This document shows, in pieces, positions 1-10,645 of a stretch of DNA of 64,000 nt; position 1 is the first letter of the stretch, and every line of letters starts with the position of its first letter. The stretch lies in sequence record NC_019408.1; one strand, given 5' to 3'. The position numbers and the translations under genes are program-made. Under the pieces are notes generated by a model. That model did no database searches. It saw only the letters and a list, made by a program, of their open reading frames with translations, and was not told the origin of the DNA.

Positions 1-2
1 GC

Positions 3-779
3 GCTCTGGGCGAAGTTTTGTGGGACTACTATGACTTGCATTACTTCAAACGGAAGCGCTCCGAGTGGAAGTACCAAAGATTTGCTTTGGTTTATCAACA
101 ACTTGCGGACGCCGCCTCGGACACGTCGATCGCGTCCAAGTTCCAGACCTACCAGCACCTGCCGCACCTGGACCCGAAGGTCCTCAAGGCGCGCATGGAC
201 GCGGGGCATGTTGACGATCGCGGCCGGCCGATCCCGGACCGCAAGGAGCACTTCCGCCGCATCGTGACCTCGGTCGACGCGGCCCAGAAAAAGGGCGCGC
301 GCAACGACTACACGGTCGTCCAGGTGTGGGGCGAGACCCACGATCGCAAGCACTACCTGATCTACCAGGAGCGCAAGAAGGTCGAGATCAACGACCTGAT
401 CGAGATGGTCGAGCGCATCTCCAAGCGCTTCGACGTCGACTCTATCCTGGTCGAGGACAAGGGCAACGGCACCGCCTACATCCAGGCGCGGGGCCAGACC
501 GACAGCCAGCGCCGGCTCGCGCCGGCCCCGATCGAGGCGATCCAGGTCCCCAGCACCTACTCCAAGGAGTTCCGCTTCAACGAGGTCATCCCGATGATCG
601 AGGCGCAAGAGGTCTACCTGCCCGACAAGGCGCCGTGGCTGGACCTGTTCATCCGCGAAGTCGGGCAGTTCCCCGAAGGCGCCCACGATGACCAAGTCGA
701 CGCCATGACGCAGTACCTCCGCTGGGCCAAGTCCAAGCGCTCGCGGTTCGGCGCGCGCAAGGTCGGCTCGATGGGCTGA
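3..779 (+). CDS. terL: Terminase large subunit, C-terminal nuclease domain (5' partial)
   Basis: RNase H-fold terminase motifs SVDAA, LVEDKGNG and HDDQVDA; frame is open from the window start. Confidence 0.92.
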   Translation, partial: ALGEVLWDYYDLHYFKRKRSEWKYQRFALVYQQLADAASDTSIASKFQTYQHLPHLDPKVLKARMDAGHVDDRGRPIPDRKEHFRRIVTSVDAAQKKGARNDYTVVQVWGETHDRKHYLIYQERKKVEINDLIEMVERISKRFDVDSILVEDKGNGTAYIQARGQTDSQRRLAPAPIEAIQVPSTYSKEFRFNEVIPMIEAQEVYLPDKAPWLDLFIREVGQFPEGAHDDQVDAMTQYLRWAKSKRSRFGARKVGSMG

Positions 780-843
780 TTAACCATCTTCGTTCACCCT
801 GTCCGGGCCTGTTAACCTTAACACACCGATGGTTAACAGGCCA

Positions 844-983
844 GGGACCCATCGAAATTAACCCTTGGGGACCCAGGGGAATCGTCAGCCGGGGACCCTG
901 GGAAATTAACCCTTGGGGACCCACCAAAATCAACCTTCGGGGACCCTAGCGAATCGTGGCTCGGGGACCCTGGCAAATCAAGG
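844..983. repeat. Six GGGACCC units at exact 24-bp period
   Basis: GGGACCC starts at 844, 868, 892, 916, 940, 964; spacers carry AAATTAACC, AAATCAACC, AAATCAAGG or GAATCGT. Confidence 0.92.
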
Positions 984-991
984 AGCCGGCG

Positions 992-1225
992 ATGGCCGAA
1001 CTCATGAGCCTGCTGTTCAACATCGCCCCGTTCCTGCTGCTGGCGATCGTCGTCTACCACGTCCTGGAGGCCGTCTGGGCGATCAGCCTGTGGGTCTACG
1101 GCCTGCGCACCCTGTGGAAGCTCCACCGCGACGACGTCAGCGAGGCCCTGACCCTGGAGCGGGCCTTGAGCCCCTTCTCCAGCCCTGGCCGCGACCGCAA
1201 CGGCAATCCCGTCCCGCCGGCCTGA
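992..1225 (+). CDS. Small membrane protein
   Basis: AGGAG RBS at 981; hydrophobic N-terminal half. Confidence 0.7.
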   Translation: MAELMSLLFNIAPFLLLAIVVYHVLEAVWAISLWVYGLRTLWKLHRDDVSEALTLERALSPFSSPGRDRNGNPVPPA

Positions 1226-1233
1226 CGACCTAT

Positions 1234-1257
1234 GTCACGGACTGTAGGTTTCATGAC
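1234..1257. promoter_or_regulatory. GTCAC-N14-ATGAC operator-like palindrome
   Basis: GTCACGGACTGTAGGTTTCATGAC; same geometry as the sites at 32127 and 38047. Confidence 0.5.
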
Positions 1258-1297
1258 AAGGTGGATTATTCCACAACGAAATCAAAGGCTTATCGCC

Positions 1298-1546
1298 ATG
1301 TCGATCCGCACCTTCTTCCACGACCTCGCCGTCCGTTTCGTCGTTTTGGGGTGGATTTTTGCCCAAAAACCCCAGAAATGGGCTCCAAAAGGGCATAATT
1401 TTCAGCCCATCCCGCCGGCCCAGGTCGAGCGGCAGGACCTCCGGGGGCGCGTGCTTCTCCTGAGGAGCTTCGGCGTCCTCGCCGCCGCATGCACAACCAT
1501 GGGCCTGTGTCAATACCTGCTCTGGCGCCGCGCGCCCATGTCATAG
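1298..1546 (+). CDS. Small membrane protein
   Basis: Two hydrophobic segments. Confidence 0.55.
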   Translation: MSIRTFFHDLAVRFVVLGWIFAQKPQKWAPKGHNFQPIPPAQVERQDLRGRVLLLRSFGVLAAACTTMGLCQYLLWRRAPMS

Positions 1547-1593
1547 ACCATCGCTTTCGTGACAGCTTCACGATCCCGTTACCGGACAACCCC

Positions 1594-1692
1594 ATGCCCC
1601 ACCTCGGTTTCTGGCTCTCCGCCGCCTGCATCGCCCTGGCCTGGGCGATCTGGGCGCTACGGCGGCTGATCGCCCCACCACCGCCCGCCTGA
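1594..1692 (+). CDS. Short hydrophobic peptide
   Basis: MPHLGFWLSAACIALAWAIWALRRL: one transmembrane helix. Confidence 0.4.
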   Translation: MPHLGFWLSAACIALAWAIWALRRLIAPPPPA

Positions 1693-1737
1693 CCCCGGCC
1701 GCGCGCGCCCGCGCCGCCGGTATCGCCCGGCCAAAGC

Positions 1738-1955
1738 GTCATATATGAGCCCTTAACCCCTCTAAGGTCGCATATATGAGACCTTACGGCCCTCTTGACG
1801 CCCTCGTGTTCCTCTGAACGCGGGGGCGTTTTGACGTCGGCGCATTTCCAACTCAACGCGCGGCCGTTTTGACGTCCGAGCGTTTTGACGCGAGCGCATT
1901 TTCGATTCGACGGGCGAGCGTTTTGACGTCCGACCGTTTTTCAACTTGACGTCGT
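1738..1955. repeat. CATATATGAG x2 and CGTTTTGACG x4 repeat cluster
   Basis: Direct repeats read from the sequence in a stretch with no convincing ORF. Confidence 0.75.
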
Positions 1956-1974
1956 TTCATTTACCAAGAGCGCC

Positions 1975-2165
1975 TTAAGGTTAACCGCCGAGCCTGGGAA
2001 GGGTTAAGGCCCGTTAACCATGTTTGTTAACCCTCAGGCCGTTAACCTATCACTCGTTAAGGTTAACGCGCCCGCCTCATTAACCCTTAGCGTGTTAAGG
2101 TTAACGCCCCGGCCCAGGCCGTTAAGGTTAACAAACATGGTTAACGGGCCAGACCGGCGTTAACC
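1975..2165. repeat. TTAA/GTTAAC-dense array with a perfect 25-bp inverted repeat
   Basis: 15 TTAA in about 190 bp; GGCCCGTTAACCATGTTTGTTAACC (2008-2032) is the reverse complement of 2126-2150. Confidence 0.88.
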
Positions 2166-2607
2166 CTAACGGCCGGCGCCCAGCCGCGCCCAGGCGCTCG
2201 CCGGCGAGCCCAGGCCCTACCGGGTATGACCTGCCGGCCATACCCGCCAGAGTGCGCCTCACGCGTCCGCGTCGGGCGACGCCGCCGCCCCGTAGTCGTG
2301 ATCATTCCAGAGTATGCCCAGAATTTCGTCAGGCCCGAACGACGGGAGAAGGGTTTGCAGGGCGTCGTATGTCTCGCGGAAGGCGCTCGCGTCGTCGTCC
2401 TGCATCCAGACCGACTCCTTGCCGGTCTTGTCGCGGAACGTGTACGCCGCGCCGTTCCCGTAGCTGTCGAGGGCGAAGCGTTCGCCCTCCGATATCCGAA
2501 GCGGTCCTGAGTACATGGGGCGTTCTCCAAGGGCGCGGGATGCGCCCGACCCGTGCAATCTGACAGCCAATTCTTAACAAAAGGTTACCGTGAGATTTTT
2601 CTTGCCG

Positions 2608-2640
2608 TTTACTTTTTGTTAAGAATTGGGGTCTAGTGTC
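2608..2640 (+). promoter_or_regulatory. CtrA-box early promoter (TTTA-N7-TTAA)
   Basis: Near-consensus CtrA site followed by a CTAG -10-like element. Confidence 0.7.
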
Positions 2641-2689
2641 CCTCTTGTCGGGGCCACCCCCGGCGCTCTTTGACATTGTGAGGCAACCC

Positions 2690-2878
2690 ATGATTCCCCA
2701 AGAAATCCTGAATCCGCGCGAGCACTGGACTCCCGTCGCCTCGCGCGAGGAAGCCGACAAGATCGCCGCGCGCTGCACCGAAGGCGACCCCGTCGGCCGC
2801 TACTATGTCGAGTCCAAGGGCGCCGGCTACGCTGTCGCCTATGACGACGAGACGGGCCAATTCGTCGCCTACCTCTAA
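2690..2878 (+). CDS. Hypothetical LTR protein
   Basis: Directly downstream of a repeated promoter; GC3-rich codon usage. Confidence 0.7.
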   Translation: MIPQEILNPREHWTPVASREEADKIAARCTEGDPVGRYYVESKGAGYAVAYDDETGQFVAYL

Positions 2879-2933
2879 CCCCGCGCCCCGGCCTCGCGCC
2901 GGGGCGCTCCGCCCCTCTTTCGGAGCCTTCCCC

Positions 2934-3326
2934 ATGCCCAGAAATTCCGGCCTCTTGCGCCTTATGGCCACCCATGCCGCCCCCGTCATCAAGGCTTATC
3001 ACGACGATTTCGCCGTGCATGACGCCAAGGTCATTGACGGACTGGAGGCGGGCGACGTGATCTTGTGGGCGCCCGACCCGTGCGGCTCGACTCTCATCGT
3101 CATGGCCCGCGCCGGGCGCCCTAATCACCGCGCCGCCGAACACTTCGAAGCCGCCCAGAGCGCCCGCAAGCCGCCCGCGTGGTTCGTCGCTTCGGTCTAT
3201 GACAACGGGGAGGCGGGCGGCTGGAATTTCGCCCCCGCCCCGGACGCGCCGGCCATTGTCGCGCGCTTCGCCGAACAAGCCGCCCGCGACCCCGCGCCCG
3301 ACCCGGTGCGCGAGCTACACCTTTAA
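2934..3326 (+). CDS. Hypothetical LTR protein
   Basis: GGAG RBS; phage-like codon usage. Confidence 0.7.
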   Translation: MPRNSGLLRLMATHAAPVIKAYHDDFAVHDAKVIDGLEAGDVILWAPDPCGSTLIVMARAGRPNHRAAEHFEAAQSARKPPAWFVASVYDNGEAGGWNFAPAPDAPAIVARFAEQAARDPAPDPVRELHL

Positions 3327-3352
3327 CCTTTTGTTAAGACATGGCCTCTATA
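3323..3352 (+). promoter_or_regulatory. CtrA-box early promoter
   Basis: Perfect TTAA-CCTTTTG-TTAA followed by CTCTATA. Confidence 0.8.
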
Positions 3353-3387
3353 CCGGGGCCATGTCCAACCCCTGGAGGCCCTGCCCC

Positions 3388-3927
3388 ATGTCCGCTATCG
3401 AAACCGCCAACCTCTCGCGCGGCCGTGTTCTCACGGTCGAAATCGACGACTGCGCCCAAGAGCCCTACGCGGGCGACAAGGGCGTGCGAATCGTCGTCCT
3501 GCATCGCCATTGGACGAACCCCGCCGCCGGCCTGCTGGACTCGGTCGCGGACGTTCAAGCCTTCGAGGCGGAGAACGCCGCGCCCGACTCCGAATGGGCG
3601 ATCTTTGAGCTATGGGTGATGGACCATAGCGGCCGGACCTTCAAGGCCGGCGCGCTGGGCGCCGGAAACCCGTTCGGCGCCGGACCCTACGCCCAATGGG
3701 ATAGCGGCCGGGTCGGAGTCATCGCCCTGGCGCGCGCCGAGTGGCCCGCCGCCGACCTCAAGACCGCCCAAGGCGTCGCCGACACCTACGGCGCATGGGC
3801 CGAAGGCGAGGTTTACCAATTCGTCATTTCGAACCGCCGGGGCGACGTGCTCGACTCGTGCGGCGGGTTCTACAGCGTCGCCGAAGCCCTGGCCGCCGGC
3901 CGCGACGCCGCCAAGGTGAAAGCGTGA
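3388..3927 (+). CDS. Hypothetical LTR protein
   Basis: GGAGG RBS; 179 aa. Confidence 0.75.
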   Translation: MSAIETANLSRGRVLTVEIDDCAQEPYAGDKGVRIVVLHRHWTNPAAGLLDSVADVQAFEAENAAPDSEWAIFELWVMDHSGRTFKAGALGAGNPFGAGPYAQWDSGRVGVIALARAEWPAADLKTAQGVADTYGAWAEGEVYQFVISNRRGDVLDSCGGFYSVAEALAAGRDAAKVKA

Positions 3928-4118
3928 GAGTCGCCCGCGAAAGCTTCGCCGTGTTCTGGACCCGCCCCGGCTGGCGCGTCCAGTTTCACGCCGACATGAA
4001 ACGGGCGCTGTACCCGACCGCCAAGGCCGCCGCCGACGCCTTCGCCGCCATGTTCCCGGCTGATCAGGTCAAGAGCGTGCGCGACGGCTCCGGCCGCTTC
4101 CTGGCCTTCAAGCGCTAG
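3924..4118 (+). CDS. Hypothetical LTR protein
   Basis: GTGA start/stop overlap with the upstream gene. Confidence 0.6.
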   Translation: MRVARESFAVFWTRPGWRVQFHADMKRALYPTAKAAADAFAAMFPADQVKSVRDGSGRFLAFKR

Positions 4119-4124
4119 ACCAGA

Positions 4125-4152
4125 CGCCCCGGAAAACTTTTCCGGGGCGTTT
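4125..4152 (+). terminator. Intrinsic terminator-like hairpin
   Basis: ACGCCCCGGAAA/TTTCCGGGGCGT stem followed by T residues. Confidence 0.6.
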
Positions 4153-4180
4153 ACTTTTTGTTAAGGAATGGCGTCTAGTG
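4150..4180 (+). promoter_or_regulatory. CtrA-box early promoter (TTTA-N7-TTAA)
   Basis: Near-identical to the 2608 promoter, including GTCTAGTGTCCCTCTTG. Confidence 0.75.
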
Positions 4181-4226
4181 TCCCTCTTGCCGCCGGGCAA
4201 TCCCGCCCGGCCTTGGAGTTCTTCCC

Positions 4227-4745
4227 ATGCCGGAATTTGTCCTAGATACGTCGGGCCAAGTCGCCCCGCCCGCCGCCGCCAAGCTTTGGCCGCACCCCCT
4301 GGCCTGGAATCAGTTGAGCGATTTTGCTCAAGGCTACATCGAGGCCCTGTTTTTCACCGAGTCGTCGCCGGCCTATGACCGCGCCGAATGGTTCGGCGCC
4401 GAGTGTCAAGAGGCCCTGACCGAAGGCACGGCGGACGGCAACATTCCGGGCGATGTCGGGTTTTCCGACCTCGCGCCCGACACCCTCAACCGCATCTTGA
4501 ACGACTGCGCCAACTTCAAGCGCGAGCACGCCGACACCCTGGCCAAGGCCTATGACCACGGCGGCGCGGCGGGCGACTATGACGAAACCCAAGCCGGCCG
4601 CGATTACTGGTACACCCGCAACGGCCATGGCGTCGGGTTTTGGGATCGCGGACTCGGCGAGATCGGCGAGGCCCTGAGCAAGGCCGCCCGCTACAGCGAG
4701 CAAAACGCCTCTTTCGAAGAGGACGGAAAAGTCTACCTGTTTTAA
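4227..4745 (+). CDS. Hypothetical LTR protein
   Basis: 172 aa; GRDYWYTRNGHGVGFWDRG motif typical of a phage hypothetical family. Confidence 0.8.
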   Translation: MPEFVLDTSGQVAPPAAAKLWPHPLAWNQLSDFAQGYIEALFFTESSPAYDRAEWFGAECQEALTEGTADGNIPGDVGFSDLAPDTLNRILNDCANFKREHADTLAKAYDHGGAAGDYDETQAGRDYWYTRNGHGVGFWDRGLGEIGEALSKAARYSEQNASFEEDGKVYLF

Positions 4746-4771
4746 CCTTTTGTTAAGACTTGGCCTCTAGG
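4742..4771 (+). promoter_or_regulatory. CtrA-box early promoter
   Basis: Perfect TTAA-N7-TTAA followed by CTCTAG. Confidence 0.8.
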
Positions 4772-4837
4772 GTCGAGTTGTCCCGGCGCCGGGGCTGGAA
4801 ACCCCGGCGCGTCCATTCCGTGAAAGGAATCCATACC

Positions 4838-5584
4838 GTGTCTTTTGGTCAATTCTCCGCCGACGCCCGCGCCCCGCTGTCGAAAGCCGCCATGCTGGAC
4901 GCCCTGCCCGCCGCCCGCCGCGACACTCTGGTCAAGGCCAGCAAGCCGGCGCGAAACACCCTCGATTACACGACGTCGGACGGCGTGCGCCGCGTGCGCC
5001 TGCATGACACCGACGTTCTGACCTTCCATGTCAACGGCGCCGTCGAGATCAACACGGGCGGCTGGAATACCCTGACCACGCGCGACCGCATCAACGCCTT
5101 CGCCCCGCCTCACGTGCGCGTCTACAGCGACAAGGGCCGCGCCATGGTCCGCGCCATGCCGGCCGGTAGCGAGGCCGTCACGTGGTCCAGCCCCGCCGCG
5201 TCCAAGCCGTTCGCCAAGCGCGCCACCGTCCACCCGGACGGCCGAATCGAAGTGGACGCCACCGTCAAGGAACTGGAGGCGATTCCTGCCCTCATCCGCC
5301 GCTATCTGGAGGCCTTCAAGGCCGGATTCCCGTTCAACTCGTCGGGCGACCCCTGGATGACGCCCGGCGCCCTCGTCGCCCCTGAAACGGCCCTGGATTG
5401 GCTGGGCGCCGACAGCGGCAAGCCGTACCTGTTCGACTCGATCCTGTTTCACGCCCATGTTGCGGCCGGCCTGACCGAAGAGGGCGCGGCCTATTACATG
5501 CGCGACGCCGCCCGGCGCGGGATCGACAAATTCAACCTTGGCCGCATCCGGCGCTATCTCAAGCGTTGCCTTCGCGAAGCCTAG
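4838..5584 (+). CDS. Hypothetical LTR protein
   Basis: AAGGAA RBS, GTG start; INTGGWNTLTTRDRINAF motif. Confidence 0.75.
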   Translation: MSFGQFSADARAPLSKAAMLDALPAARRDTLVKASKPARNTLDYTTSDGVRRVRLHDTDVLTFHVNGAVEINTGGWNTLTTRDRINAFAPPHVRVYSDKGRAMVRAMPAGSEAVTWSSPAASKPFAKRATVHPDGRIEVDATVKELEAIPALIRRYLEAFKAGFPFNSSGDPWMTPGALVAPETALDWLGADSGKPYLFDSILFHAHVAAGLTEEGAAYYMRDAARRGIDKFNLGRIRRYLKRCLREA

Positions 5585-5593
5585 GACCCTCCG

Positions 5594-5625
5594 GCCGCGC
5601 CTCCCCTGGCGCGGCCTTTCTTTTT
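5594..5625 (+). terminator. Intrinsic terminator
   Basis: GGCCGCGC/GCGCGGCC stem followed by TTTCTTTTT. Confidence 0.75.
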
Positions 5626-5636
5626 CCGTGTACGCG

Positions 5637-5667
5637 TTAACCTGTTGTTAAGACTTTATCCGCTAGT
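5637..5667 (+). promoter_or_regulatory. CtrA-box early promoter
   Basis: Perfect TTAA-CCTGTTG-TTAA followed by GCTAGT. Confidence 0.8.
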
Positions 5668-5714
5668 GTCCCTTTGCCGGCGCACTTCCGCGCCCTCACC
5701 TGGAGATTTTCCCC

Positions 5715-6335
5715 ATGGCCCGCCTGATCAAAGCCAAGACCGCCGCCGAACAAGCCGAAGCCCTCGCCAGCCTGCGCAAGATGATCAAGCCGGGCGACAC
5801 GGTTTATCCCGTGCTCCGCCACGTCTCGACCTCCGGCATGTTGCGGGTCATTGACCTGATTATCCCGGTCACCGTCACCCAAACCGACACCTTGCCGGCC
5901 GATGCGCGCGGCTTCAAGATCGGCGTTCAAGCCTATGCGACCCCGCCGGAGCGCAACGCCCCCCGCGCCTTCTCGACCGGAACCGTAACGGGTTTCGACG
6001 CCGACACCGTGACCATTGCCTATCAGGCCACCGCCGACGGCCGGGGCGACGCGGAGTCGGTGACGTGGCCCCGTGGTCAGGTCAAGTTCTACCGCAAGAG
6101 CACGCGCCCCGGCGTCCGCTCGATCGGCTGGCTTGCCGCGAAGGCCATGGGCGACACCTTCGACGCCGACCGCCAAGGAATCAAGGTCGGCGGGTGCGGT
6201 ATGGATATGGGCTTTCACCTCGTTTACAGCCTGGGCCGCACCCTGTGGCCGAACGGGACGAAAAAGCCCCATGGCTCGCGCAATGGCGAGCCGGACCGTG
6301 ACGGCGGTTATGCGCTGAAACATTCCTGGCTTTAA
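5715..6335 (+). CDS. Hypothetical LTR protein
   Basis: GGAG RBS; RHVSTSGMLRVI and GCGMDMGFHLVY motifs typical of a phage hypothetical family. Confidence 0.8.
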   Translation: MARLIKAKTAAEQAEALASLRKMIKPGDTVYPVLRHVSTSGMLRVIDLIIPVTVTQTDTLPADARGFKIGVQAYATPPERNAPRAFSTGTVTGFDADTVTIAYQATADGRGDAESVTWPRGQVKFYRKSTRPGVRSIGWLAAKAMGDTFDADRQGIKVGGCGMDMGFHLVYSLGRTLWPNGTKKPHGSRNGEPDRDGGYALKHSWL

Positions 6336-6362
6336 CTTTTTGTTAAGAGTTTAGCCGCTAAT
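6332..6362 (+). promoter_or_regulatory. CtrA-box early promoter
   Basis: Perfect TTAA-N7-TTAA followed by GCTAAT. Confidence 0.8.
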
Positions 6363-6412
6363 GTCTCCTTGCGGCCGGGCAATCCCGCCCGGCCGCACTC
6401 GGAACCAAGCCC

Positions 6413-6685
6413 ATGACCCGCGCTCAAGCCCTCGCTGAAATGAACGCCCTCCCCGGTATCATCGCCTCTTTCGAGCGCGAGACGGGCGAATATCGCGTCA
6501 CCCTGCGCTTTGGCCCCCTGCCGGGCGGCCGGGGCGCTCAAGAGTGGATGCACAAGCGCCGCGAAGCCGTCGCCAGCTACAGCGACGACAAGGCCGACGC
6601 CCTGGCCACCGCCCGCGACATGTCGGCCCGCTGGGAAGCCATGACGCCCGCGCAACGTGATCACCTGTACCGCCACCCCGCGTAA
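6413..6685 (+). CDS. Hypothetical LTR protein
   Basis: ORF directly downstream of a promoter. Confidence 0.7.
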   Translation: MTRAQALAEMNALPGIIASFERETGEYRVTLRFGPLPGGRGAQEWMHKRREAVASYSDDKADALATARDMSARWEAMTPAQRDHLYRHPA

Positions 6686-6712
6686 CCCTTCGTTAAGACC
6701 TCGCCGCCTAGA
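6682..6712 (+). promoter_or_regulatory. CtrA-box early promoter (GTAA-N7-TTAA)
   Basis: Same architecture; CCTAGA -10-like element. Confidence 0.7.
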
Positions 6713-6749
6713 GTGGCGGGGTCATCAACCCCCGCAAGGATCGCCCGAC

Positions 6750-7028
6750 ATGCGCAAGCCCCTCACCCAAGAGCAAAAGGCCCGCCGCCGCGCCCAACGC
6801 CGCGCCGCCCGCCTCAACTGGAGCGACGAACGCCGCGCGGCCGAATACGCCCGCCAATCGCGCTTTTTCCTGATGATCGCCGAACGCGCCCAAGCGGCGG
6901 GCGACGCCAAGGAAGCCGCCCGCCTCGCCACCGTCGCCCAACGCAAGGTCACTAACTGGCGCATGGCGCAAGCCTGCGCTCGCATCAACGCCCTTTCCGT
7001 CCACGCCTGGGCCGCTGTCGCGGCCTAA
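6750..7028 (+). CDS. Basic Arg/Ala-rich LTR protein
   Basis: AAGGA RBS. Confidence 0.7.
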   Translation: MRKPLTQEQKARRRAQRRAARLNWSDERRAAEYARQSRFFLMIAERAQAAGDAKEAARLATVAQRKVTNWRMAQACARINALSVHAWAAVAA

Positions 7029-7061
7029 GCCGCCGCGCCCGAACCGAAGGAACCCCGCCCC

Positions 7062-7385
7062 ATGCCCCCGATGACTCACCCTCACGCCCTGGCCTTGATC
7101 GCGCTCGCGGAAAAGGTCCTGCCCCTGACCCGGCTGGACCCGCTGAATCAGCGCGCCGCCGCTGTCGACCTGATCGGCGATCTTTACAGCCTCGCCGACT
7201 CCATCGACGCCACCGCCGGCCATCTGGTCGCCGCTGTCAACGGCGCCTTGCGTGACGGCTGCGAGGGCTACGCGCCCAAGAGCCGCGCCGCCGCCGCTGT
7301 CGCCACCGTCCGCGCCGACGAACTGCGCTCCGCCCTGGAAGCGTACACCGAAGCCGCCGCCCTGGCCCTGCCGAAGGTCGCCTAA
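7062..7385 (+). CDS. Hypothetical LTR protein
   Basis: AAGGA RBS; codon usage. Confidence 0.7.
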   Translation: MPPMTHPHALALIALAEKVLPLTRLDPLNQRAAAVDLIGDLYSLADSIDATAGHLVAAVNGALRDGCEGYAPKSRAAAAVATVRADELRSALEAYTEAAALALPKVA

Positions 7386-7386
7386 C

Positions 7387-7959
7387 ATGACCGTCACCCG
7401 CTACCGCCTCCCCGACATGACCGCTTACGGTAAGGGGCTTTCCGAAACGCTTTATGCGGCGTTCGAAGCCCTGAAAAATCCGCAAGCGCCCTACAAGCCG
7501 GGCGAACGCGCCCGCCTCATCGAGTCGCTGATCACCTACAGCGCCGGCGCCCATACGCCCAAGGCCCCCGACTCGGTCCTCGCAACCCTGCTTTGGGTTG
7601 TCGAAATGGCGCAAGAGCGCGCCACCGACTCCGACTTCAACACGGCGCGCGAGGCGCTGGACGAACACGCCGCCTTAGGGTTCGTCACCGATTGGCTAGA
7701 AGCGCACGGCTTGGACGTGGCCCGCATCCGGGGCGCGGAACTCAGCGCCGAAGCCCGCGCCTCTCTGGTTGAGGAAGCCGACGCCGAACAAGCCAAGCTG
7801 GACGCCCTGGAAGCCGCCCAGACGGGCGAAACGCCCGCCGACGTGATCACCGAAGCCCTCGCCCCGTTCCTGGGCTCCACGGTCGCGGAAAACCACTCTG
7901 ACGACGTGCTGGCGGCGCTGGACGCGGCCGGCTTCACCATCACCCGAAAGGACGCCTGA
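7387..7959 (+). CDS. Hypothetical LTR protein
   Basis: Tightly coupled to its neighbours. Confidence 0.7.
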   Translation: MTVTRYRLPDMTAYGKGLSETLYAAFEALKNPQAPYKPGERARLIESLITYSAGAHTPKAPDSVLATLLWVVEMAQERATDSDFNTAREALDEHAALGFVTDWLEAHGLDVARIRGAELSAEARASLVEEADAEQAKLDALEAAQTGETPADVITEALAPFLGSTVAENHSDDVLAALDAAGFTITRKDA

Positions 7960-7961
7960 GC

Positions 7962-8681
7962 ATGACCGCCCCCGCCCTGACCCGCGCCGCCGCCCTGGAA
8001 GCCCTGGAAATCGCCCGCGCCAACCTCGCCGCCGGCCCCGCCCTGGCCAAGGCCGCCGACGGCGTGACGGATGTGTGTCACTTCGCCCTGACCCGCGCCG
8101 CCATGCTCAAGGCCGCCGACATGATCGCCGCCGCCGCCCCGGCGCTGGACCTGGGCGCCGTCTCGACGGCCGATCTAATCGCCGAACTCTACCGCCGCCC
8201 CGTCGCGCTTTGCGTGTTCGAAGCCGCCGACGTGCTCACCGAAGCGCCCGGCGCTTTCGACGACGCCGACGACGCGGGCCAATGGCTGGCGAGCAAGTCC
8301 AGCTATATCGGCGACGCGATGAGCGGCGCCGGCTGGGACTCGGTGCGCTATCACCTGACCGCCGACGGCCGGGCGACCGATGACGACGAGGAAGGCGAGG
8401 AAGCCGACGACGAGGGCGACGCCCTCCCCGTCGCCGTGACCTTGGAGCAAGGCGACGCCGTCCCCGTGGTCGGGCGCTTCGCCACCGTGTCGGAGGCTGA
8501 AACCTTCCTGGCGTCGCCGATCCGTGATCAAGCCGCCCTCACCGCCGGGCGCTACGGTATCGACGCGCCGCACGGCGTGGCCAGCGACGACGACGCCGTG
8601 ACCCTGGCGCGCCGCCTGGGCTGGGCTGGCGTGGCGAACGCGGCCGAAGCCTTGCGCTTCCTGGCCAAAATCGAGCCTTAA
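7962..8681 (+). CDS. Hypothetical LTR protein with an acidic linker
   Basis: 239 aa; AAGGA RBS. Confidence 0.75.
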   Translation: MTAPALTRAAALEALEIARANLAAGPALAKAADGVTDVCHFALTRAAMLKAADMIAAAAPALDLGAVSTADLIAELYRRPVALCVFEAADVLTEAPGAFDDADDAGQWLASKSSYIGDAMSGAGWDSVRYHLTADGRATDDDEEGEEADDEGDALPVAVTLEQGDAVPVVGRFATVSEAETFLASPIRDQAALTAGRYGIDAPHGVASDDDAVTLARRLGWAGVANAAEALRFLAKIEP

Positions 8682-8691
8682 GCCCGGCTAA

Positions 8692-8715
8692 GTCATCAAA
8701 CCTATCGTCTATGAC
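8692..8715. promoter_or_regulatory. GTCAT-N14-ATGAC operator-like palindrome
   Basis: Same geometry; more TCACG/CGTGAC half-sites lie at 8718-8782. Confidence 0.45.
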
Positions 8716-8872
8716 ATGTCACGGGCTGAATACTTGGCTCGTGACGACTTCCCCTAGTAAAGCTCACGCCTGTTTTCGTGACATAGCGCAAGGAATTGAA
8801 ATCGTTGGAAAAACTCCTAGAGGGTCACAAAGTTCTGGTTTGGCTGCTGCTTCTGGCTTGCCTCTGGCGCTT

Positions 8873-8903
8873 TTAACCCTTTGTTAAGACTTTACCCGCT
8901 AGG
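8873..8903 (+). promoter_or_regulatory. CtrA-box early promoter
   Basis: Perfect TTAA-CCCTTTG-TTAA followed by GCTAGG. Confidence 0.8.
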
Positions 8904-8961
8904 GTGACTTTGCGGCCGGGCAATCCCGCCCCGCCGCCCTTCCTTCTCTGGAGCCGCTACC

Positions 8962-9402
8962 ATGCAAACCGCTTCCGTGATCCTCCCCGCCCAAACCCTG
9001 GCCGGCGCCGACCTTGGCCCCGTGCTGATGGTCTTCGCCCTGGAACTGTCGCAGCACTTCGGCGACGTCACCCAAGCCCCGACCGTCGAGCGCTGGACCG
9101 ATGAGGCCACGGGCGCCGAGTTCGTCGCCGACTGTGTGGCGTTCACGGTGTCGGCGGACTGGACCGCCAAGGGCGGGCGCATGGCGCGCCGCCTGGAGAA
9201 CATGGCCGCCCGCTACGCCGCCCCGTGCGAGGCCCCGGCCCTGACCGTCCAGCACGCCGACGGCTCAACCGTCTACGTCGCCGCCCTGGAGGCGCTGGCG
9301 CGCCCTGCCCCGGTGCAAGGCCCCTCGCGCATCGCAGACCCGGCTTTCCTCCCTCGCCAGCGTGAGGACAAGGCCGCCCGCTTCGAACGCCTGACCGCCT
9401 AG
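8962..9402 (+). CDS. Hypothetical LTR protein
   Basis: GGAG RBS. Confidence 0.7.
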   Translation: MQTASVILPAQTLAGADLGPVLMVFALELSQHFGDVTQAPTVERWTDEATGAEFVADCVAFTVSADWTAKGGRMARRLENMAARYAAPCEAPALTVQHADGSTVYVAALEALARPAPVQGPSRIADPAFLPRQREDKAARFERLTA

Positions 9403-9425
9403 GCCTTGGCCTAGCCTCTCCCCTA

Positions 9426-9458
9426 GCGCACCGCCTCGCAAGCGGTGCGCTTTTCTTT
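9426..9458 (+). terminator. Intrinsic terminator
   Basis: AGCGCACCGC/GCGGTGCGCT stem followed by TTTCTTT. Confidence 0.75.
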
Positions 9459-9463
9459 GCGTA

Positions 9464-9494
9464 TTAACTTGTTGTTAAGAGTTTAGCTGATAGT
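9464..9494 (+). promoter_or_regulatory. CtrA-box early promoter
   Basis: Perfect TTAA-CTTGTTG-TTAA followed by GATAGT. Confidence 0.8.
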
Positions 9495-9546
9495 GTCCCC
9501 TTGTTGGCGACGCATCCCGCGCCGCTCCTCTCTTGGATCGCTCCAC

Positions 9547-9939
9547 ATGGCCCGCCCTTCTGACCTGCTCAACGTCAACGCCGCCCGCGTCCTGGCTTGC
9601 CTGGAAGCCCTGGCCGGCGTCGTTAAGACCGCCCCGGAAACCGATCGCGCCGCCTTCTCCTACCTGCTGGACGCGGCCGAATTCGTCGCTTCCTGGCGCC
9701 GCAACCATACGGAAACCGATCGCCGTCGCGCCTACGGTGCAGCGTGCGCGGCGCAAGCCCTGGCCCTGACCAATGCCTATCAGCCCGCGACCATGCAAGG
9801 CGGGGCGGTGCGCCGCGCTCTGGGCGCCTATGCCGCCGCCCTTAAGCTGCTGCTGGACGGTGAGCCGGTGCAAGCCGTGCGCGCGGCCGAAGGCGCCGCC
9901 CAGAGCGTGCGCGGGCGCTTCGCTAACACCCGCATCTAG
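9547..9939 (+). CDS. Hypothetical Ala-rich LTR protein
   Basis: ORF between two promoters. Confidence 0.7.
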   Translation: MARPSDLLNVNAARVLACLEALAGVVKTAPETDRAAFSYLLDAAEFVASWRRNHTETDRRRAYGAACAAQALALTNAYQPATMQGGAVRRALGAYAAALKLLLDGEPVQAVRAAEGAAQSVRGRFANTRI

Positions 9940-9970
9940 TAACCTTCTGTTAAGACCCCCTGGCCTATAG
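9939..9970 (+). promoter_or_regulatory. CtrA-box early promoter (GTAA-N7-TTAA)
   Basis: Followed by CCTATAGT. Confidence 0.7.
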
Positions 9971-9996
9971 TCGGGGGGTCGCAAGGAGACACCCAC

Positions 9997-10188
9997 ATGA
10001 CCCGCCCCGGCCCCGCCTCGCTCCTCTCGCCCGCCGCCACCTTCTCGGCGCATAACCTGACCCTTCCGGGCGCTCGCCCTATGCCCCTGCCCAAGGCGCA
10101 AGGCCTGACCCTTCGCCAGTGCGTCGCCCTGGGCGCTGGCCTTGGCGCTCTGGCCTATGTCGCGTTGCGCGCGCTGGGCGTGCTCTGA
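9997..10188 (+). CDS. Small membrane protein
   Basis: AAGGAG RBS; C-terminal transmembrane helix. Confidence 0.7.
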   Translation: MTRPGPASLLSPAATFSAHNLTLPGARPMPLPKAQGLTLRQCVALGAGLGALAYVALRALGVL

Positions 10189-10645
10189 CCTGACCCCCGG
10201 CGCCCCCGGTCGCCTCGCGGTAGGGCTGTCCCATATTGAGACGGCCCTACCGGGGTAGTGTTTCTTTTTGGGACGAGGGACCCAAAGGCCCCCTACGTTA
10301 ACCATTTTTGGCGGCGCCCCCCGGCGCCTCAGGATAGCGTTGAACTTTTCGGTTGACATAATCAGACCCTCAGGCGAAGAAGGGCGCGTTCAGGCCGAGC
10401 GGCGCCCCCGACTAACCGCCGGTCCAGGCCCCATCCCTTCTCCCCACGTCCCAGTCCACGGGATGTAGGGACCGGGGGTGGGGCCTTTTTATTTTCCGGT
10501 CGGGGACCCGCCGGGAAGGCGTTTTCAAAACCCAAACGCTAAATCGACCCTCAAAAAATTTCCAAAATCATAAACCCGGTTGACAGAACCAGACTGGCTG
10601 CTAAGTGTTGCTCCACGACACGCCAACGCAAGCCCAGGAGGCTCC

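Follow-up and report, generated by a model that had tools for sequence, protein, structure and literature searches.

CtrA-box promoter cassettes in the direct terminal repeat of Caulobacter phage CcrRogue

The terminal repeat and its CtrA-box cassettes

The window analyzed here is a stretch of 64,000 nucleotides that corresponds to bases 1-64000 of Caulobacter phage CcrRogue (JX100814 / NC_019408), which has a genome of 223,720 bp and 66% G+C; over window bases 2400-10400 the identity to that record, at equal coordinates, is 100%. In the annotation of JX100814, the left copy of the direct terminal repeat (DTR) occupies positions 1..10321; it is 10,321 bp long and holds 19 small genes, each annotated "hypothetical protein," with gp004 being the sole gene on the minus strand. 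The elements of concern are promoter-like cassettes built on the box TTAA-N7-TTAA of CtrA, the master cell-cycle regulator of the host. Every one of these cassettes is housed in the DTR, and the whole of the region studied (2608-9970) lies inside its left copy. For counts beyond the window, the full genome with both DTR copies is 223.7 kb and the unit genome is 213 kb.

An exact search found perfect TTAA-N7-TTAA boxes at 3323, 4742, 5637, 6332, 8873, and 9464, six in total, where 100 dinucleotide-preserving shuffles gave an expectation of 0.06. When up to one mismatch was allowed there were 11 boxes against 1.02 expected, the most found in any shuffle being three; the five one-mismatch boxes are those at 2608, 4150, 6682, and 9939, plus one on the minus strand at 2574-2588. 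The CtrA-box pattern is real and far above chance. The original prediction listed ten sites, all of which are present, but the true count is eleven: the minus-strand box at 2574-2588, which has the sequence GTAAC-N5-GTTAA and points at gp004, had been overlooked. The half-site proximal to the promoter is unbroken in all 11 of the CcrRogue boxes.

The boxes are also confined to the repeat. A scan of the full genome with at most one mismatch placed 22 of 22 boxes in the two DTR copies and none in the intervening ~203 kb, and a weight matrix trained exclusively on the cassettes of other phages recovered precisely the 11 CcrRogue boxes, with scores of 26.6-50.5 bits, the runner-up in the unit genome reaching 10.6. 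The tetranucleotide TTAA is itself scarce, with 92 copies in the unit genome, 43 of them (47%) in the DTR, which makes up 4.8% of the length. The boxes sit between genes, five of them (3323, 4742, 6332, 6682, and 9939) overlapping or abutting the preceding stop codon, and each is oriented to a gene start 58-96 nt downstream.

Alignment of the eleven boxes shows that the conserved unit extends beyond the box. In order, a cassette consists of (T/G)T(A/T)AC, five mostly T-rich bases, GTTAA followed by G, a stretch of 11-12 nt, and a hexamer; past the hexamer come about 8 bases (often CCCTTG), a GC-rich hairpin, GGAG or GGA, and a start codon 25-64 nt from the hexamer. At nine of the 11 boxes the hexamer, 11-12 nt past the box, has the form TAnnGT (TAGTGT, TAGGGT, TAATGT, TAGAGT, or TATAGT). 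A conserved -10-like element beginning TAG, TAT, or TAA had been proposed for every site, which is accurate for these nine; at equal distance, however, the box at 3323 has a weak TATACC and that at 2574(-) has CAGATT.

The first two cassettes are divergent, with back-to-back boxes spanning 2574-2622 and 19 bp between them. Cassette 1 (2516-2588, minus strand) has its box at 2574-2588, the -10-like CAGATT at 2557-2562, a hairpin at 2531-2547 with an ATCCC loop, GGAG, and the ATG of gp004 at 2516. Cassette 2 (2608-2692, on the plus strand like all those that follow) has its box at 2608-2622 with a TTTAC half-site, TAGTGT at 2634-2639, a hairpin at 2647-2664, and the ATG of gp005 at 2690; gp006 lies downstream of gp005 without a box of its own. 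Cassette 3 (3323-3390) has a perfect box at 3323-3337 over the stop codon of gp006, the weak TATACC at 3349-3354, and the ATG of gp007 at 3388, with gp008 following. Cassette 4 (4122-4229) is preceded by a terminator hairpin at 4122-4152, the T-tract of which enters the box at 4150-4164; TAGTGT at 4176-4181, a hairpin at 4192-4211 with an AATCCC loop, and the ATG of gp009 at 4227 complete it. The perfect box of cassette 5 (4742-4840) lies at 4742-4756 over the gp009 stop codon, with TAGGGT at 4768-4773, a hairpin at 4786-4810, and the start of gp010 at 4838. Cassette 6 (5593-5717) comprises a terminator at 5593-5616 with its T-run, a perfect box at 5637-5651, TAGTGT at 5664-5669, a hairpin at 5679-5694, and the ATG of gp011 at 5715.

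The second half of the set follows the same order. Cassette 7 (6332-6415) has a perfect box at 6332-6346 over the stop codon of gp011, TAATGT at 6359-6364, a hairpin at 6370-6397 with an 11-bp stem, an AATCCC loop, and z = -6.2, and the ATG of gp012 at 6413. In cassette 8 (6682-6752), the box at 6682-6696 has a GTAAC half-site and lies over the gp012 stop codon, an inverted repeat (6697-6705 / 6715-6723) flanks the TAGAGT at 6709-6714, and the ATG of gp013 is at 6750, with gp014-gp016 downstream. Cassette 9 (8873-8964) has a perfect box at 8873-8887, TAGGGT at 8900-8905, a hairpin at 8912-8937 with an AATCCC loop, and the ATG of gp017 at 8962. Cassette 10 (9425-9549) again has a terminator with a T-run (9425-9451), then a perfect box at 9464-9478, TAGTGT at 9491-9496, a hairpin at 9506-9526 with an ATCCC loop, and the ATG of gp018 at 9547. 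Cassette 11 (9939-9999) has a box at 9939-9953 with a GTAAC half-site abutting the gp018 stop codon, TATAGT at 9966-9971 flanked by an inverted repeat (9954-9960 / 9974-9980), and the ATG of gp019 at 9997. A terminator hairpin and T-run thus stand ahead of three cassettes, those with boxes at 4150, 5637, and 9464.

The candidate transcription units are gp004, gp005(-gp006), gp007-gp008, gp009, gp010, gp011, gp012, gp013-gp016, gp017, gp018, and gp019. These units take in 16 of the 19 DTR genes; gp001-gp003 and the non-coding stretch 700-2260 are without one, and the claim that the whole terminal-repeat program is wired to CtrA was overstated to that extent.

Two further observations concern the surroundings of these boxes. 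The divergent double-box layout also occurs in the phages Swift and BL57, and repeatedly in CcrPW (L076: 177/211, 1208/1242, and 6156/6190). An unannotated frame of 58 codons at 8711-8887 ends within the 8873 box; it is open in eight of the nine phages compared and broken in Swift, and it may be non-coding, given the strong DNA-level conservation of the region.

Promoter architecture, conservation, and precedent

The 5' base of the box is computed to lie at -38 where the spacer is 11 nt and at -39 where it is 12 nt, on the assumption of the usual 7 nt between the -10 hexamer and a predicted start. In the S5 dataset of Zhou et al. (2015; PMC4287350), the full CtrA motif begins at -38, -39, or -40 relative to mapped host transcription start sites (TSSs) in 31 of 44 listed rows; it is at -38 for ccrM and at -39 for fliQ, fliF, divK, ftsQ, and ctrA P2. 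Applied to the phage, the host motif distance puts the start 6-8 nt past TAnnGT, so the two measures agree without fitting. Predicted starts are near 2550(-), 2646, 3361, 4188, 4780, 5676, 6371, 6721, 8912, 9503, and 9978. At 17 bp upstream of the hexamer the sequence is ACCTTT or ACTTTT, unlike TTGACA, and a scan with the sigma-70 consensus detected no cassette in the direction of its gene; the single sigma-70 match that overlaps a box (2622 to 2595, minus strand) heads away from gp005. Since there is no TTGACA-like -35, the promoters should require an activator.

Like cassettes are present in the DTRs of phiCbK, Swift, Karma, Magneto, CcrBL10, Ccr29, Ccr10, and BL57, and the terminal repeat of CcrPW, a phage of 308 kb, has more than 25 more. 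The spacing from box to -10 is 11 or 12 nt in 83 of 83 unique cassettes from ten phages. Within those 83, GTTAA, the proximal half-site, shows 98-100% conservation. In the distal half-site, 14% have G at position 1 and 36% have T at position 3, and four of the five positions are retained at 84-100%. Spacer positions 6-8 are variable, and the conservation of TTG at box positions 9-11, at 90-98%, is more than the scan demanded. The search criteria account for part of this conservation, but not for the T's at spacer positions 9-10 or the fixed spacing. A scan of IMG/VR with the cassette pattern gave 118 matches, mostly single, with several per contig only in CcrPW and CcrBL10; the matches L010, L014, and L057 have 29-32% G+C.

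CtrA sites were said in the original prediction to have been reported before in these phages, and Mascolo et al. (2022; PMC9437464) bear this out. There, predicted CtrA sites of phiCbK-like phages cluster in the DTRs, upstream of genes of unknown function; CcrRogue is tabulated as "LPEG," with 23 sites predicted by matrix, and its DTR is included in the Figure 9 alignment. The signature of that class (skewed positions, mostly intergenic, high scores) describes CcrRogue as analyzed here, with all of the boxes in the DTR and none in the 203 kb between. In electrophoretic mobility shift assays (EMSA) of the same study, phosphorylated CtrA (CtrA~P) shifts probes from upstream of phiCbK gp005 and gp018, and changing TTAA to GGCC abolishes the shift; lacZ fusions of the two promoters are strong in wild type and are lower in a temperature-sensitive ctrA strain (ctrA-ts) by >29-fold for gp005 and 5-fold for gp018 (PMC9437464). 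With DTR sites published for CcrRogue and assays published for phiCbK, the finding is already known: CtrA-box promoters in the DTR have been on record since 2022, CcrRogue included. The moderate novelty first assigned to them does not hold, and the CtrA~P EMSA and ctrA-ts fusions that had been proposed as tests were done on this sister phage. The sites in that paper are from an identical phage group and region and have an identical motif, with no difference in kind; its binding and activation assays, however, used phiCbK DNA and not Rogue DNA. Mascolo et al. (2022) had likewise already made, and tested, the broader point that a lytic phage turns on about 16 genes of unknown function by reading its host's master cell-cycle regulator.

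Sequence comparison connects the Rogue cassettes with those tested. The Rogue 8873 region and the phiCbK gp018 promoter region have 88% column identity and their downstream proteins are 71% identical; the Rogue 8873 promoter is the orthologue of the tested phiCbK promoter. The Rogue 2574(-) cassette, from the box onward, is a homologue of the cassette at the phiCbK gp005 promoter, the other one tested by EMSA. That the cassettes are promoters with the CtrA box as the -35 region, as had been suggested at the outset, is well supported by the motif statistics, the rigid spacing of 11-12 nt, the agreement with host positions at -38/-39, and the EMSA and ctrA-ts data for phiCbK.

Some cassette types have inverted repeats of their own. 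In the gp005-type cassette of phiCbK (L002:2575-2640) an 8-10 bp inverted repeat, CTGGCGCC/GGCGCCAG, flanks the CtrA box, and in that of BL57 (L008:2585-2650) the flanking repeat is CCCTGACAGC/GCTGTCAGGG; Rogue retains just the downstream arm (2560-2568), beside the inverted gp004 cassette. In gp013- and gp019-type cassettes, a 7-9 bp inverted repeat flanks the -10 (Rogue 6697-6723 and 9954-9980; BL57 L008:7245-7273 and 10319-10347; Karma L004 near 9867), and its arms vary in a compensatory manner: GACCCCC/GGGGGTC in Rogue, GACCTCCCG/CGGGAGGTC in BL57, and ACCTCCCG/CGGGAGGT in Karma. This repeat would fold only in read-through RNA of the upstream gene or as a DNA cruciform.

Probable activation by CtrA and the possible time of expression

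The eleven cassettes are very probably host-RNA-polymerase promoters of the CtrA-activated class that together drive 16 of the 19 DTR genes. The missing -35 help would come to the polymerase from a phosphorylated CtrA dimer seated on both TTAA half-sites (about -38 to -24), and the mode of activation would be that of host ccrM, fliQ, and ctrA P2. Host CtrA-activated promoters (ccrM, fliQ, fliF, ctrA P2, divK, and ftsQ) have in common with the phage cassettes a TTAA-N7-TTAA at -38 to -40, a position that is predicted for the phage, along with one site per promoter and no good -35. The phage boxes, however, are nearer to the consensus and far more uniform, with TTAAC-N5-GTTAA and a T-rich spacer, and the phage cassettes have a 5' hairpin and are without the full upstream motif of SciP. 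Direct observation covers the motif, its confinement to the DTR, the fixed geometry, and conservation across nine relatives and CcrPW; CtrA~P binding and ctrA dependence come from the sister phage phiCbK; the transcription starts, the CtrA dependence of individual Rogue promoters, and the timing discussed below are predictions.

Several points weigh against this assignment. The distal half-site departs from TTAA, as TTTAC or GTAAC, in five of the 11 cassettes, and the -10 elements of two (TATACC and CAGATT) are poor. Independent events are also fewer than the site count implies, many cassettes being evident copies of each other. Duplication is also part of a very improbable alternative, by which these would be plain sigma-73 promoters with TTGTTAA as a short-spaced -35, CtrA would be dispensable, and the likeness to a CtrA box would come from copying of the cassette. 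The flanks common to the cassettes suggest such duplication, and the conservation of TTG at box positions 9-11 (90-98%) would suit such a -35, but the spacer from TTGTTA to the -10 would be merely 12-13 bp. The distal half-site would be of no use to a -35 of this kind and is nevertheless kept at four of its five positions, and in two phiCbK cassettes of like design, mutation of the half-site ended CtrA binding and the ctrA-ts background cut expression (PMC9437464).

It is also unlikely that the main role of the boxes is to serve as a sink for CtrA~P, in which case the 22 full sites per genome and a TTAA array at 1975-2165, amplified by phage replication, would lift the host G1 replication block, with transcription being secondary. 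The concentration of 47% of the unit-genome TTAA in 4.8% of its length, including 15 copies within 190 bp away from promoter positions, speaks for such a sink; however, neither the lock of 11-12 nt to the -10 nor the gene-facing orientation is needed by a pure sink, the half-site array is without any pair at the canonical 11-nt start-to-start spacing, and titration of CtrA is hypothetical. Activation of transcription by CtrA is the preferred reading of the boxes.

The labels "early" and "swarmer" of the original prediction are not established. Slightly more likely than not, the promoters would fire once the DTR enters a cell that holds CtrA~P, namely an infected swarmer. Against such immediate firing, host promoters of equal architecture have at most 0.29 of their maximal activity in swarmer cells (PMC4287350). 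"Lytic deferment," as put forward by Mascolo et al. (2022; PMC9437464), holds instead that there is no firing in the swarmer and that the cassettes are switched on by the return of CtrA in predivisional cells; it is a serious candidate, although somewhat short of probable, and would delay the lytic program until the host sits among dividing cells. It is consistent with host TSSs that have the full site at -38/-39, which peak at 80-120 min and are at no more than 0.29 of the maximum at 0 min, and with the ability of SciP to block CtrA-activated promoters in swarmer cells; in the same data, Zhou et al. ascribe the swarmer silence to SciP bound at -60 to -90 (PMC4287350). However, a search upstream of the 11 cassettes found no full copy of the SciP motif GCGNC-N5-GNCGC, and its half motifs occurred at the background density of 31 per kb. 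Membership of the host "full motif" group was itself set by expression cluster, which makes the swarmer silence of that group partly circular. During phiCbK infection, moreover, 41% of phage genes overall had their peak at 15 min, when phage mRNA already made up 14% of transcripts (PMC10688885). A search of RNA runs for CcrRogue returned only wastewater assemblies, which contained 6-14% of its words in contigs unable to show starts.

Related systems offer partial parallels. Coliphage T5, like these phages, has a non-permuted terminal repeat of ~10 kb with small genes of unknown function and host-polymerase promoters (Gill et al. 2012, PMC3556154); the pre-early (first-step-transfer) promoters of T5, however, are strong, constitutive sigma-70 promoters and are not gated by a response regulator, unlike the CtrA cassettes. 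The phiCbK homologue of A1 lies outside the repeat (PMC3556154), and the likeness to T5 is one of repeat architecture only. Spo0A sites in phi29 and LexA sites in several phages likewise put sites for a host state-sensor at the phage's own early promoters, but Spo0A and LexA repress phage promoters, whereas CtrA activates, at least in phiCbK.

The 5' hairpin, the genes, and other features of the repeat

A GC-rich stem begins 0-6 nt past the predicted start in eight of the 11 Rogue cassettes, and the loop is (A)ATCCC in five of the Rogue hairpins; a search of the rest of the unit genome found no ATCCC-loop hairpin with a stem of at least 6 bp. Perfect stems of 7 bp or more are present in 26% of the 86 unique cassettes and in 3% of random windows drawn from these loci and matched for GC; for stems of 5 bp or more, the shares are 62% and 26%. 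There are 25 distinct sequences of the 5' arm, which mostly starts 8-12 nt past the hexamer. Mean minimum free energy is -15.9 kcal/mol for cassettes and -12.4 kcal/mol for controls, with a Mann-Whitney p of 1e-9 that is not a true probability since the sequences are related. When a covariance model from 34 cassettes was re-aligned to the full set of loci, 69.8% of cells were paired, compared with 62% after shuffling and 40-50% with slid partners, and double changes occurred at eight of 10 pairs. Two points count against a conserved structure: the support from covariation is only moderate, partly because loop length and internal mismatches differ among cassette types, and the background of the cassettes, with 66-70% G+C, forms hairpins easily.

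Stem-loops at the 5' end shield bacterial mRNAs from 5'-end-dependent attack by RNase E. By analogy, the most likely role of the hairpin would be to protect the DTR mRNAs from 5'-end-dependent decay, and the conservation of the loop hints that a factor may recognize it. It is possible, although doubtful, that the cassette has two layers, CtrA-gated initiation and a 5'-end stem-loop, often with (A)AUCCC, as a common post-transcriptional handle; such a handle, if real, would either stabilize the DTR messages or allow all of them to be switched off at once by a factor of the phage or the host. Searches of PMC9437464 found no mention of a 5' hairpin or of transcription starts, and the shared hairpin is possibly a modest addition to the known finding. 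An intrinsic attenuator or terminator was also considered and was rejected, there being no T-run after the hairpin. A pseudoknot between the loop and the Shine-Dalgarno sequence had a few cases that looked compensatory, but was dropped since any pyrimidine-rich loop is complementary to GGAG.

The proteins encoded by the 16 cassette-driven genes give little indication of function. None has an above-threshold match in Pfam, all of their PHROGs matches are to families of "unknown function," and a PDB sequence search with four of the largest proteins found nothing below E = 0.1; a published statement is likewise that no function is assignable. Swift has no homologue of gp006, and its next box is at its gp005 stop codon, which gives gp006 the look of an insertion in Rogue. 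Within the stretch 2879-2963, a GC-rich hairpin with no T-run behind it is present at ~2881-2905.

The TTAA array at 1975-2165 has 15 TTAA in 190 bp, mostly as GTTAAC or TTAAGGTTAAC, and a perfect 25-bp inverted repeat (2008-2032 / 2126-2150). Candidate identities for it are an origin, a packaging signal, and a cluster of CtrA half-sites, and a similar array is present in phiCbK, Swift, BL57, and Ccr10. Rfam matches to microRNA precursors at 2007-2151, on both strands, were sub-threshold and due to the palindrome, and were rejected as not being a known RNA. Directly past the terminase stop codon (779), six GGGGACCC words with a 24-nt period occupy 844-981, and TTAAC words occur among 780-910. 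At 1826-1962 there are five irregularly spaced, iteron-like copies of TTTTGACG(T/C)C, and upstream of them, at 1739-1786, are two copies of CATATATGAG in a palindromic layout. The sequence TGTCA-N16-TGACA occurs at 1232-1257 and 1539-1564, just upstream of gp002 and gp003, both of which are without a CtrA box, and may be the operator of a different regulator.

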